Source of the DNA: Salpingoeca rosetta
Taxonomy: Eukaryota > Protista > Choanoflagellata
DNA: 64,000 nt
NCBI GenBank assembly: GCA_033442325.1
Contig: JAWQFM010000009.1
Coordinates: 1,117,460 to 1,181,459, forward strand
Reading direction: 5' to 3'
In this document: piece by piece, positions 48,775-53,560 of the stretch
Layout: each line of letters starts with the position of its first letter
How positions within the stretch are numbered: the stretch's first letter is position 1
Made by a program: the position numbers and the translations under genes
Notes under the pieces: generated by a model
What the model was told of the DNA's origin: nothing
Seen by the model: only the letters and a program-made list of their open reading frames with translations
Databases searched by the model: none

Positions 48775-51700
48775 ATGTCGCTGCACAAGTCGTTGGCGGT
48801 GGACCAGCTGTCAGGACAGCCACTGGTGCGTGAATGTGCACAAGCAAACGTGTCCCGTGTGTATGGGTGTGTGTGTGTGTGCGTGTGTGTGTGTGTGCGA
48901 TGAAGCCCAGTTAGTTTGTTTTGTCCTCCTCATCATCACCATCATCCTATCATCATCGCTTTGTGTCGTGGTTGTGTTTGTATTTGCGGGTGTTCATCGA
49001 ACAGGACCCAAGCAACGCCATCCGCGCCAAGGACGGCCGCTTCTGTGAGTACTGCCTCATCACAACAAAGGCCGCAAATGGGGACAATGGGCCCTACGCC
49101 TGTGTGCTGTTCCACGTGCGCTTCGATGCACTCGTTTTACCTTTGATGCACTCGTTTTGTTGTCCGCGATCAACTCATCCACAACAACAACAACAACAAC
49201 AACAACAACAACAACAACAACAACAACAACAACAACAACAACAACAACAACAACAACAACAACAACAACAACAACAACAACAACAACAACAACAACAACA
49301 ACAACAACAACAACAACAACAACAACAACAACAACATCTCCACCACAACTGTTGTCCCTCCCCCTCTCTCTGCCCCCCCCCCTCTCCTCTCCCCTCTCTT
49401 CCACATTCTTCCACATTCTTCTCGACCAGACAATGCCAGCACGCTGGGGAAAGCAGGGGAGGACCCGCTGCTCTCGCTCGTCACGGGTCACCCCGTGGAA
49501 CCGGCTGTGGCAGGGGGCGAGGACGCAGACGCAGCCATGCTGGTACAGGATTTGGAGGACCTCGTCGCCCCACCGGCAGATGCCCGCAAACCGCACACCG
49601 TGCACGACTTTGTGCTCCGCCACGCGCAGGAGCTCATGATCAACGAAGTGCTGCCGTCGACGGAGCCCACCCGCCTCGTCTTCATCGGAAACCAGCTTGA
49701 CGGCGTCAGCACATGCATTGAGCGCCTCTTGCATGCCCACTTCCTTCCGCAGGACACGCGCGTGCCCATTGTCATCAACCTTGTCCCCGGCGCCGTGAGC
49801 GCACCCCGCATCACACAGCGCCGGCGCACGGGCGCCCGCGAGGAGATTCCACTCGCCCTCCCCGTGTACGATGGCCGCCACACGCCTGCAGCTGCGCGCG
49901 ATGGCGTCACATCAGACCACGTGCCGTGGGCAGCCCTCAAGACGGCGCTCACACAGCGTGCCAAGCTGTTGTTGGAGACGGTCAACGCGGACCCAGGCGC
50001 CACGCCGCGCTTTATCCACACGGATGCAGAGATTGTCGTGCGCCTCTCCAGCCCTGCGTATCCGCACCTCACCCTTGTCGATGTTCCTGGACGGGCCGTG
50101 CATCCCCCATCCTACCTCGCCGCCGTCGAGTACGTTTTTGCGGTTGTGAGCAATGTGCTGTACTGTGTTGTGCTGTGTTTTGTGTGTGTGTGTGTGTCTG
50201 TGTGTGTGTGTGTGTGTGTGTGTGTGTGTGTGTGTGTGTGTGTGTGTGTGTGTGTGTGTGTGTGTGTGTGNNNNNNNNNNNNNNNNNNNNNNNNNNNNNN
50301 NNNNNNNNNNNNNNNNNNNNNNNNNNNNNNNNNNNNNNNNNNNNNNNNNNNNNNNNNNNNNNNNNNNNNNGTGTGTGTGTGTGTGTGTGTCTGTGTGTGT
50401 GTCTGTGTGTCTGTGTGTGTGTCTGTGTGTGTGTGTGTGTGTGTCCGTGTGTGTCTGTGTCTGTGTATGTGTGTGTGTCTGTCTATGTGTGCGTGTGCGT
50501 GTGCGTGCTGTTGCGAGTGTTGAGCGCTGCTCGCCGATGTACTTACGCAAACGCATACACTACACGCACACGGACACGCATACACACTCTCTCCCAGGGA
50601 CGTGATGCACGCGTACCTGAAGCAGGACCACGTGTTCCCCGTCGTTGTGGCGCGCGCCACGTCCACGCTCAACAACGTCGCTGCAATCAGCCTGCTGCAA
50701 CAGCACCACAGCCACCTCCTCCCACGCAGCAGCATCGTGTTCACGCGCGTGGATATGGATCGCAGGGCCGATGACACCCTCACCGCGCTCCTGCGCTCAG
50801 ACCTCCTCGAGTACTTTGGCTTTGGCTTTGCTGTGCTCGCGTCCCCACGCACAGCACCGGCCAGGCACGATGGCAGTGATGCTGACGGCGACGGTGACGA
50901 TGATGCATCAGCGGCAGCAGCACGATGCGACCACCGCGTGTACGCACAGGCGGGCGAGGAGGAGGAGCGCATTGCAGCGGAGCTGGCGCACATCGAGGCC
51001 CTGGAGGGGAAGGTTGGCATTGGCAGCCTGCTCGCCATTGTCAAGCGCAAGTGCGAGGACACGCTGCTGCACACGTGGGTTGCGCACGCGTACCACGCTG
51101 CCCACGCCCGCCGCCAGCACCTGCACGCACAGCTGCTTGAGCTGTCACCCTACTTCACCACGACGATGCCTGCAAGCAGCAAGGACTGGCGCGCGCGTGC
51201 CATGGAGGCTGAGCCGTGCAAGCGGGACCTGCCACTGCCAGAGACGACGCCCGAGCTTCTGCTGCGCACTTACGTTGTCGAGCGGGCAGAGGAGATCCTC
51301 AATGCCTGCAAGCACTCCATGCACGCATGCGTCCTGCGACGCATCAACGAGCTGGCCACCGAGCTTGAGCGAGCCGAGGCGTCAATCGAGCGGGAACTGG
51401 CCCAGCATGAGGAGGAGGAGCGCGAGAGCGCAGCCAACAGCGGCGGTGATGGTGATGATGATGGCAGCGCGGGCGATGCGCAGGCGATTGTTGAGAAGAT
51501 GCAGATGGCGCGCCGCTGCCACAAGAAGATTGCGTCACGCGTGGACGACATTGCAGCCAAGTTGCGCGCGGGGGCCAACGCGGACGCGCTAGCCACCATT
51601 GTTTCGCGTGCACTTGAGGCGGACAACAGCGACGTGAAGATGCACCGCTTTGCCGCGCTCATCGCAAACACGCGCAGCGACCTGCGCTCGCTCCTGCTGG

Positions 51701-53560
51701 AACGCGTTGACGCCGTGCTTGCTGACGCCGCTGTGGAGTTTGCAGACACGTACACGCGGGACGCGCGCAAGCTGTTCACGTTCACGGGCTCGAAGTTCGT
51801 GGCATTTGAGCATGCCACCCCATCGCCTGCAAGCGCATACACGTCGACGAGCGTTCGGTACGATCCGCCCACGTCGGAGTCCCTGGCGCAGAAGCTTCGG
51901 TTCCATCTGGTCGCGGCGATGATGGATGTCGACTTTGACGACATCCACGCAACGCTGTTTGCGGACCTGAACCGCCCACTCGACCTGACGGAGAAGGATG
52001 GTGTGGAGGACACGCGGCTGGCGCTGCTGCTGGATATGGAGAGGGTTGACCGCGGGCTTGTGGACATCAACACGCTGCATGCGCTGCTGCAGACAAACAA
52101 GCAGGAGGAGTACTTTGCCAACACCGTCCTTGATGACATTTCTCCGGAGTTTTTCGAGGGAGTTGGTGAGTCGACACTGCAGCAGCTGCGCTTCTTCTTC
52201 CAGCAGGACCCATCCTTCACCTCAATCACGTACGTGTGCTTGTTTGTTTGTTTGTTTGTTTGTTTGTATGTATGCATGTATGTATGTTTGTTTGATTGTT
52301 TGTTTGTTTGTTTGATTGTTTGTTTGTTTGTTTGTTTGTGTGTTTGTATGTATGCATGTATGTTTGATTGTTTGTTTGTTTGTTTGTTTGTTTGGTTGTT
52401 TGTTTGTGTGTTTGTTTGTTTGTTTGTTTGTGTGTTTGTTTGTTTGTTTGTTTGCTTGCTTGTTTGTTTGCTTGTTTGTTTGCTTGCTTGTTCGTGCGTG
52501 TGTGTGAGCGTCGCACTGCTCATGATTACCTACCCCTTTACGTCGTTGCAATTTGCCTCATTCAACGCATTTCACCTCACCCACCACGTCTGTGCAGGCT
52601 GACGCTCGGGGATGAAATCCCTGCGGAGACGGTGATCAACGCCCTTGGTGTCCTGTGCGTCAGCAAGCACCTCACCGAGCTGACGTATGTGTTGTTGGCA
52701 TGCCACCAAGTTTCGGGATTTGCACTGCTGTCCGCTCGGCTGTTTTCGTTTGTGATGGAGGGATCCGTGCGGCTTTGAGCTGCTTGTGCCTGTACCTCCT
52801 TTGTTCTGTCTGTCACACGCTCTGTTGTTCATTCACACGTGTTGGTGAACACGACAGGGTGCACTCGCTGGATTTCACGCGCAAGGACGATGCCGGAGAC
52901 CTGTTTGCCAAGGAAGCCCTCAAAGAACTCCTCCTTTACAGCCGCACCCTTCGCACCCTCACGTACGCACCGCTGTCTTTGTGTGTGTGTGTGTGTGTGT
53001 CTGTGTGTCTGTGTGTGTGTGTGTCTGTGTCTGTGTGTGTGTCTGTGTGTGTGTCTGTGTGTGTGTGTGTCTGTGTGTGCGTGTTTGTTTACTTCTGCCT
53101 CTGTGCATGCGTGTATGTTTGTCCGGCTGTGTGTGCATGTGTGTTGTGTGTATGGCTCTGTATGTGTGTGCACGTGTGTGTGTTGTGTGTATGGCTCTGT
53201 ATGTGTGTGCACGTGTGTGTGTGTCTGTGTGTGTGTCTCTCTCTGTTTACTTCTGTCTCTGTGCATGCGTGTATGTTTGTCCGGCTGTGTGTGCATGTGT
53301 GTGCCCATCTTCCTTCTGTCATGCTTGCATCTCAACGGTTGGTTTGTGTTTGCTCCACCGTCGGGGCCCCCACCCCACCACGCTTCTTTGAAATGCGCAA
53401 CAGGCTGGTGTCGTGCCAATGCGGCGGTACGGGCTGGCTGGACGCTGCGCTGCGGCACAATGTGAGCGTGACGACGCTGCAGACGCGCCACGAGGACGAG
53501 CCCGAGTTTCTCGTCACCAAGCGCGAGGACTTTCAGGACACGCAAGCGGTCGTCTACTGA
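48775..53560 (+). CDS. U-box-like + dynamin/Mx-superfamily GTPase-like domain (degenerate P-loop) + helical stalk + RNI-type LRR protein
   Basis: Exons 48775-48825, 49005-49044, 49430-50129, 50598-52229, 52598-52684, 52858-52962, 53404-53560; all GT-AG and in phase. G1 RLVFIGNQLDGVST, G2 DTRVP, G3 LTLVDVPG, G4 FTRVD. N-terminus LAVDQLSGQPLDPSNAIRAKDGRFYNASTL..SLVTGHPV. C-terminal SKHLTELTV, SRTLRTLTL, ALRHNVSVTTL. Confidence 0.8.
49181..49336. repeat. Perfect (CAA)n microsatellite, about 50 units, in intron 2 of the dynamin-like gene
   Basis: Directly visible run acaacaacaa... Confidence 0.97.
50271..50370. other. Assembly gap (100 N) inside a (GT)n tract in intron 3 of the dynamin-like gene
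   Basis: Run of 100 n flanked by GT repeats. Confidence 1.
52238..52492. repeat. Degenerate (TTTG)n intronic microsatellite
   Basis: Directly visible run tgtttgtttg... Confidence 0.93.

Follow-up and report, generated by a model that had tools for sequence, protein, structure and literature searches.

What kind of protein joins a U-box-like head, a dynamin-type G domain and leucine-rich repeats (LRRs) in a single chain, and does it still act as a GTPase or as a ubiquitin ligase (E3)? The question is raised by PTSG_04903, a gene of the choanoflagellate Salpingoeca rosetta found on the forward strand of contig JAWQFM010000009.1, within the 64,000-nucleotide stretch analysed here (positions 1,117,460 to 1,181,459 of the contig; hereafter the window). 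A preliminary description of the locus, made from the letters of the window, had proposed such a domain order and compared it to the layout of NLR-type immune receptors. Our analysis leads, with moderate confidence, to a different view of its activity: PTSG_04903 is probably a maintained pseudoenzyme, a non-catalytic scaffold or regulator that comes from a U-box–dynamin–LRR family of E3/GTPase proteins. This reading is favoured because the loss of the Walker A lysine is conserved in at least three genera and, in PTSG_04903, is carried by an intact and expressed gene of 923 codons.

The G domain was the only domain recognised by Pfam in the single sequence of PTSG_04903 (Dynamin_N, residues 113-300, E 1e-6, with 29.3 bits where the cutoff is 27), and Vps1, dynamin and Mx were matched by a profile of its own clade with E values between 4e-8 and 1e-4. 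The preliminary description had listed a full set of dynamin motifs, G1 to G4. Alignments retained G2 (T140), G3 (D248-V-P-G251) and G4 (T313-R-V-D316, with a K to R change), but not G1: the P-loop reads GNQLDGVS, which departs from the GxxxxGK[ST] pattern, and the alignments to dynamin-1, Vps1 and the family place a valine at the position of the lysine. Switch I has lost four residues relative to the family members with an intact GKS, while Thr140 of G2 is retained. The replacement of the lysine by Val or Ala and the four-residue deletion are common to PTSG_04903 (database protein P0001), its C14 paralog, P0002, P0003 and P0007, and these same lysine-less proteins keep S124, T140, DxxG and T-x-x-D. 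Family-wide, variation is almost absent from the P-loop Ser and from G2, G3 and G4.

PTSG_04903 shares with dynamin, Vps1 and Mx a homologous G domain, an N-terminal helix ahead of the P-loop and a long region past the G domain. In contrast to these proteins, it has no PH domain or recognisable GED, its head is U-box-derived, it ends in an LRR tail and its middle region is not demonstrably a dynamin stalk, in addition to the changes in the P-loop and switch I. Substitution of the same Walker A lysine has been engineered in dynamin K44A and MxA K83A, which lose GTP binding or hydrolysis, K44A being a dominant negative; in PTSG_04903, however, the change arose naturally and has been conserved throughout a clade.

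Homologs of PTSG_04903 are scarce. A phmmer search run exhaustively over 1.84 billion cluster representatives recovered 20 proteins at E ≤ 1e-3, and word-indexed searches with exon 4 or with a four-sequence alignment returned PTSG_04903 itself as the sole match. The full layout together with the lysine loss was found in P0002 (Microstomoeca roanoka), P0003 (Barroeca monosierra) and P0007 (source unknown), and the homologs from the Microstomoeca transcriptome (P0002) and from Barroeca are colinear with PTSG_04903 at full length. In an unrooted maximum-likelihood tree built from 18 rows and 794 columns, the lysine-less proteins fall into a single clade (99/96 support), its sister is the GKS-intact Hartaetosiga P0020 (92/88), and U-box-bearing proteins occur in both other major clades. 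The simplest reading of these relationships would be an ancestral U-box for the family and a single loss of the lysine.

In relatives, a true U-box lies immediately upstream of this same G domain. The effector/dynamin/LRR order of the preliminary description recurs in Microstomoeca roanoka P0019, which holds in one chain a U-box (E 9e-13), Dynamin_N (E 2e-21) and LRR_6 (E 1.7e-16), the GKS of its P-loop being intact. A Pfam-significant U-box was found together with Dynamin_N in P0005, P0009, P0011 and P0014; P0009 has two U-boxes and a Neuralized domain, and P0014 two U-boxes and Filamin. Among the more remote hits, P0005, which is PTSG_02966 of S. rosetta (U-box E 1.5e-16), P0008 and P0011 are genuine U-box + Dynamin_N fusions that retain GKS. 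Hartaetosiga P0020 and the S. rosetta C22 gene combine a U-box-like head, an intact GKS and an LRR-type tail. P0019, PTSG_02966 and the C22 paralog belong to the same family as PTSG_04903 by phmmer and by the tree and have the same module order; they differ from it in that all three keep GKS and that P0019 and P0005 also have a Pfam-significant U-box, both of which signatures PTSG_04903 has lost. Judged from these sequences, the U-box–dynamin–LRR order is an evolved family design and not a product of chance.

About four family members were found in S. rosetta, ranging from fully canonical to doubly degenerate, too few for an NLR-like paralog expansion. The C22 paralog (C22:835000-844999, minus strand, open reading frame 7494-4444, followed by small exons as far as about 2500) carries a U-box-like head whose central helix is more complete, THAD as G4 and at least five RNI-type LRR exons of one repeat each, and may be the ortholog of Hartaetosiga P0020. 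The C14 paralog (C14:978000-987000, minus strand, about 6941 to 641) has exons of 60, 40, 661, 1503, 87, 99 and 87 nt, the same plan as in PTSG_04903, and its P-loop has degenerated further. The last exon stays open for another 680 codons through a low-complexity region and, by Pfam, TPR repeats (E 7e-14) and MLLE/PABC (E 5e-18), which would give a protein of ~1526 aa if this is one gene. No LRR exons were detected within 10 kb downstream of PTSG_02966 on C4.

Two irregularities were observed among the relatives. In P0003 of Barroeca monosierra, residues ~800-883 match a C-terminal fragment of SMC_N (E 3e-29) right behind the LRR-like repeats, probably an annotation fusion of neighbouring genes. 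In C4:2080000-2089999, residues 500-824 of PTSG_02966 are encoded again just downstream (3639-2629 versus 6117-3739, 93.8% identity), a partial duplication, in tandem, of the stretch of this gene that codes for the stalk.

The N-terminal head of PTSG_04903 had been described as having U-box-like spacing, a claim that holds for the profile of its clade but not for the Pfam U-box model (PF04564), which gave no match at E up to 10 to residues 1-75, residues 1-110 or the whole protein. When four lysine-less N-termini were compared by hhalign with six true U-boxes from the relatives P0005, P0008, P0009 and P0014, the probability was 93.9% (E 1.5e-7, score 40, 46 columns); 200 column shuffles scored 9.1 ± 1.9 with a maximum of 15.7, and the reversed alignment scored 11.1. 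The PTSG_04903 N-terminus alone reached a score of 22.5 (P 6e-4). This alignment places a 2-residue insertion ahead of the hairpin, a shortened central helix and a Leu at the position of the loop-2 Pro. The U-box residues that contact ubiquitin-conjugating enzymes (E2) are known from the CHIP and E4B structures, namely the loop-1 Ile, the central helix and the loop-2 Pro. In PTSG_04903 these elements are incomplete, with Leu13 kept in loop 1 and with the helix and loop-2 changes just given.

The AlphaFold2 (AF2) model of the N-terminus had a mean predicted local distance difference test score (pLDDT) of 61.6 overall and 71-81 for residues 11-40, with the hairpin-helix order of a U-box. Its best matches in the PDB were nearly all RING/U-box and were weak (Foldseek E 0.2-1.5, VIA Z 4.3-5.5), and they do not count as independent evidence since the input alignment contained true U-boxes. 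The clade profile of the N-terminus matched nothing among PDB sequences at E up to 10. On the strength of the profile comparison we conclude that the head is U-box-derived, and it is probably not E3-competent.

At the C-terminus, the three to four RNI/tropomodulin-type LRRs of the preliminary description were borne out. With an input of lysine-less clade sequences only, AF2 modelled residues 770-923 as four strand-helix units followed by a C-terminal capping helix (pLDDT 73.8, predicted template modelling score 0.67). Foldseek placed the tropomodulin and leiomodin LRRs at the top of the PDB matches (E 6e-5 to 1e-3, probability 1.0), with axonemal LRR proteins, CARMIL, the LRRs of NLRP1/3 and RNI lower down. 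The own-clade sequence profile of this region matched tropomodulin 1io0 (E 2.8e-4), and the ten structure clusters nearest to its ESM Atlas model were all LRR_6/LRR_TMOD. The Pfam LRR models did not match the single PTSG_04903 sequence at E up to 10; LRR_6 does match the relative P0019.

As modelled, the LRR of PTSG_04903 is a short four-unit tropomodulin-like cap and not a long sensor horseshoe. It resembles the tropomodulin/leiomodin LRR (PF27087) and the RNI-type LRR (PF13516), its best structural and profile matches, in having short alpha/beta repeats and a capping helix. It differs from tropomodulin and leiomodin in that identity is 11-15%, the domain is appended to a dynamin-like protein and actin pointed-end binding is not indicated.

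Between the G domain and the cap, residues ~340-800 may form a dynamin-type stalk, to judge from their position; the other leads are weak. The whole-family profile is colinear with full-length MxA only with the G domain as part of it, and ESM features label the middle region as Dynamin_M at 0.82-0.88, which we take as a lead only. A homodimer prediction for residues 335-800 (score 0.00, fold uncertain, alignment unused) speaks neither for nor against a stalk. A motif of the form D-x-S-x-x-[KR]-x-x-R-F, at residues 606-615 of PTSG_04903, is found in this region family-wide, from intact to degenerate members.

The gene structure, its expression, the domain homologies, the lysine loss and the clade membership are established by these results, which can be arranged into the following scenario. 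A small eukaryotic family of dynamin/Mx-like large GTPases, the fuller form of which has an N-terminal U-box E3 module, would in choanoflagellates also carry a C-terminal RNI/tropomodulin-type LRR. In one choanoflagellate sub-clade the Walker A lysine would have been replaced once (K to V/A), switch I shortened and the U-box eroded, with no loss of the overall fold, of G2-G4 or of the LRR cap. PTSG_04903 would then most likely neither hydrolyse GTP nor recruit E2, having lost its GTPase and E3 activities; its LRR cap would bind a protein partner, and the dynamin-type middle region could allow it to oligomerise, either by itself or in co-assembly with active paralogs. The resulting state would resemble a natural dynamin K44A.

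Several observations weigh against this scenario. Some nucleotide binding could have survived, seeing that the P-loop Ser and G2, G3 and G4 are conserved clade-wide, and E2 binding is possible given the hydrophobic L13 at the loop-1 position and the loop-2 Pro kept by P0002. As to assembly, a stalk-only family profile found nothing meaningful in the PDB, and the ESM model of residues 330-800 was poor, with a template modelling score of at most 0.26 in the Atlas structure search. Finally, exon junctions 3-4 to 6-7 rest not on reads but on canonical splice sites, the annotation, the intron positions and phases of a paralog and the colinearity of homologs.

An active sensor-effector would be the first alternative to a maintained pseudoenzyme: the LRR would sense a ligand, the dynamin scaffold would oligomerise with non-canonical or no use of nucleotide, and the U-box-like head would recruit E2, as in an NLR- or TRIM-like immune device. 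The conserved G2-G4 motifs and P-loop Ser are consistent with it, and so are the intact architecture of P0019 and the C22 paralog, the exchange of the C-terminus for Neuralized or Filamin in TRIM fashion, and a ~5-8-fold variation in read depth among three RNA samples, opposite to that of the neighbouring gene, which hints at regulated expression. We nevertheless consider it unlikely, as the Walker A Lys is gone and switch I is shortened, the U-box is beyond the reach of Pfam even at E 10 and has a truncated central helix and a Leu for the loop-2 Pro, the LRR has only four tropomodulin-like units, and about four family members in S. rosetta do not amount to an NLR-like expansion.

The comparison with NLR/STAND and TRIM proteins is no more than an analogy of layout: a head with effector or E3 function, a core that oligomerises and, at the C-terminus, a module for recognition, together with a TRIM-like swapping of the C-terminus among LRR, Neuralized and Filamin in the family. 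PTSG_04903 differs from both groups in having no NACHT/NB-ARC, B-box or coiled-coil, its core being a TRAFAC-class dynamin G domain. Since Dynamin_N is the only NTPase domain found by Pfam and this NTPase is not of the STAND class, PTSG_04903 does not belong to the NLRs.

Closer in composition is RNF112 (neurolastin), whose GTPase is of the atlastin/GBP type. RNF112 is an E3 ligase with a true RING finger, fused to a dynamin-like GTPase with GTPase activity (PMC12012479). It is the closest described fusion of an E3 module with a dynamin-superfamily GTPase, and such fusions are already known. In both proteins an E3 cross-brace module comes first, ahead of a G domain of the dynamin superfamily and a middle domain that is helical in RNF112 and may be so in PTSG_04903, but RNF112 has no LRR, whereas PTSG_04903 has a U-box-derived head, a lysine-less Mx/Vps1-like G domain and an LRR cap.

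A decaying paralog, that is, a transcribed relic of the U-box–dynamin–LRR family whose function is gone, would also explain the degradation of both catalytic signatures and the small number of homologs among the 1.84 billion representatives. This explanation is quite improbable. The 923 codons run over seven exons without stops or frameshifts, PTSG_04903 is spliced and expressed, and the LRR still folds confidently in AF2; moreover, the same substitutions and the full architecture are found in at least three choanoflagellate genera at ~30% identity, which argues for long-term maintenance.

The annotation of PTSG_04903 can move from 'hypothetical protein' to a putative U-box-derived dynamin-like pseudo-GTPase with a tropomodulin-type LRR. 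Literature searches with the locus tags, and for U-box and dynamin together with choanoflagellate or LRR, gave no description of this architecture, and a giant-virus paper that names U-box and dynamin treats the two separately. Cell-autonomous immunity in animals, to which choanoflagellates are the sister group, depends centrally on Mx and GBP of the dynamin superfamily and on the E3 ligases TRIM and RNF213. The family shows that holozoan evolution did try out a U-box, an Mx-like GTPase and an LRR hard-wired in one chain. S. rosetta can be manipulated genetically, and its paralog series is suited to asking how GTPase-driven assembly couples to E3 activity and what a lysine-less dynamin does in vivo. 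A wider conjecture, drawn by analogy with TRIM, GBP and NLR, is that U-box–dynamin(Mx-like)–LRR proteins might be an as yet undescribed class of assembly-driven ubiquitin-ligase sensors in the nearest relatives of animals, with the PTSG_04903 clade as catalytically dead regulators or decoys that tune or mimic active paralogs (PTSG_02966 and the C22 gene); we consider it speculative and rather doubtful.

The gene itself lies on the + strand at 48775-53560, in a eukaryotic window of ~55% GC in which short exons alternate with introns rich in (GT)n, (CAA)n and (GTTT)n (Table 1). Its seven joined exons, all with GT..AG borders, form a single open frame, the translation of which is letter-for-letter identical to P0001 (S. 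rosetta PTSG_04903, 923 aa). Transcript evidence came from three stranded raw RNA-seq samples and one contig covering 48230-49180. As had been proposed, the three small 5' exons are spliced together: junction 48825|49005 was crossed by 12, 39 and 12 reads in the three samples and by the contig, and 10, 42 and 12 reads leaving exon 2 at 49044, as well as the contig, ran into the opening 30 nt of exon 3. The transcription start site of PTSG_04903 is marked by an accumulation of molecule ends at 48707-48714. The upstream + strand gene (covered here over 48230-48585) is transcribed with its own poly(A) tail from 48585, and RNA cover is zero at 48614-48677; the two genes are separate. Read depth in the three samples was ~74/17/21 for the upstream gene and ~28/139/18 for PTSG_04903, changing in opposite directions, which suggests that expression of PTSG_04903 is condition-dependent.

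Table 1. Features of the PTSG_04903 locus, in window coordinates.
Feature	Position	Strand	Basis
Transcription start region and 5' untranslated region	48707..48774	+	RNA read ends piled at 48707 and 48714
Exon 1, residues 1-17: start codon and first U-box-like part	48775-48825	+	Donor GT, RNA reads, identity to P0001
Exon 2, residues 18-31 (first base of codon 31): U-box-like beta-hairpin	49005-49044	+	RNA reads
Exon 3, residues 31-264: U-box-like end, linker/helix like the bundle signalling element (BSE), G1-G3	49430-50129	+	AG/GT borders, continuous frame
Intron 3, phase 2, (GT)n-rich, with assembly gap 50271-50370	50130-50597	+	Paralog intron at same codon/phase
Exon 4, residues 264-807: rest of G domain with G4 TRVD, ~470-aa middle region, first LRR strand	50598-52229	+	
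Exon 5, 29 aa: a single LRR unit whose phase-2 borders fall within beta-strands	52598-52684	+	
Exon 6, one LRR unit, 35 aa	52858-52962	+	tblastn match to corresponding paralog exon
Exon 7, last LRR unit and capping helix, stop 53558-53560	53404-53560	+	
U-box-derived region, residues ~7-56, exons 1-3	48793..49506	+	Profile comparison, AF2 core
P-loop GNQLDGVS, residues 117-124, Val replacing the Walker A/G1 Lys	49687..49710	+	Alignments to dynamin-1/Vps1 and family
Predicted tropomodulin/RNI-type LRR domain, residues ~801-923, end of exon 4 and exons 5-7	52207..53557	+	AF2, Foldseek, profile

The assembly gap falls inside intron 3 and is flanked on both sides by (GT)n, and the preliminary assumption of a single gene across it was upheld. 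The frame runs on across the intron (codon 264 = GA|G), and in the C14 paralog this codon is split in the same phase by an intron free of gaps. The distance from the DxPG glycine to a conserved Leu is 20 residues in both proteins. Positions 1-111 of the Dynamin_N profile match inside exon 3, and human dynamin-1 aligns unbroken over the exon 3/4 junction (residues 231-326), the sole alignment gap lying earlier, within exon 3. Given the ungapped paralog intron, the continuous frame and the unbroken dynamin-1 alignment, an exon hidden in the gap is, on sequence grounds, very unlikely. That the whole gene model is an artefact, with 5' mini-exons or LRR exons taken from another gene or an exon lost in the gap, draws on the gap inside the gene and on the downstream junctions lacking reads, but is scarcely credible against the read-supported junctions 1-2 and 2-3, the end of the upstream gene at 48585, the same intron positions and phases in an ungapped paralog, the transcript-derived Microstomoeca P0002, colinear with PTSG_04903 over residues 4-917, and the folding of the joined LRR exons as one domain.

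Exon 2 is 40 nt long in both PTSG_04903 and the C14 paralog, and exon 5 (87 nt) has the length of its C14 equivalent. Introns 4-6 (52230-52597, 52685-52857 and 52963-53403) are all in phase 2 and cut the same position of successive LRR beta-strands, so that exons 5 and 6 each correspond to one repeat; the one-repeat-per-exon rule also applies in the C14 and C22 paralogs.

Long simple repeats occupy the introns of PTSG_04903 at 49181-49336, 50160-50480, 52240-52500 and 52975-53230; they comprise (CAA)n of ~155 nt, (GT)n around the gap, (GTTT)n and (GT)n. The paralog introns are GT-rich past the donor and CA-rich ahead of the acceptor. The next downstream gene, also on the + strand, starts at 54003 as a separate long open frame, with an N-terminus that by eye looks WD-repeat or cilia-associated-like.

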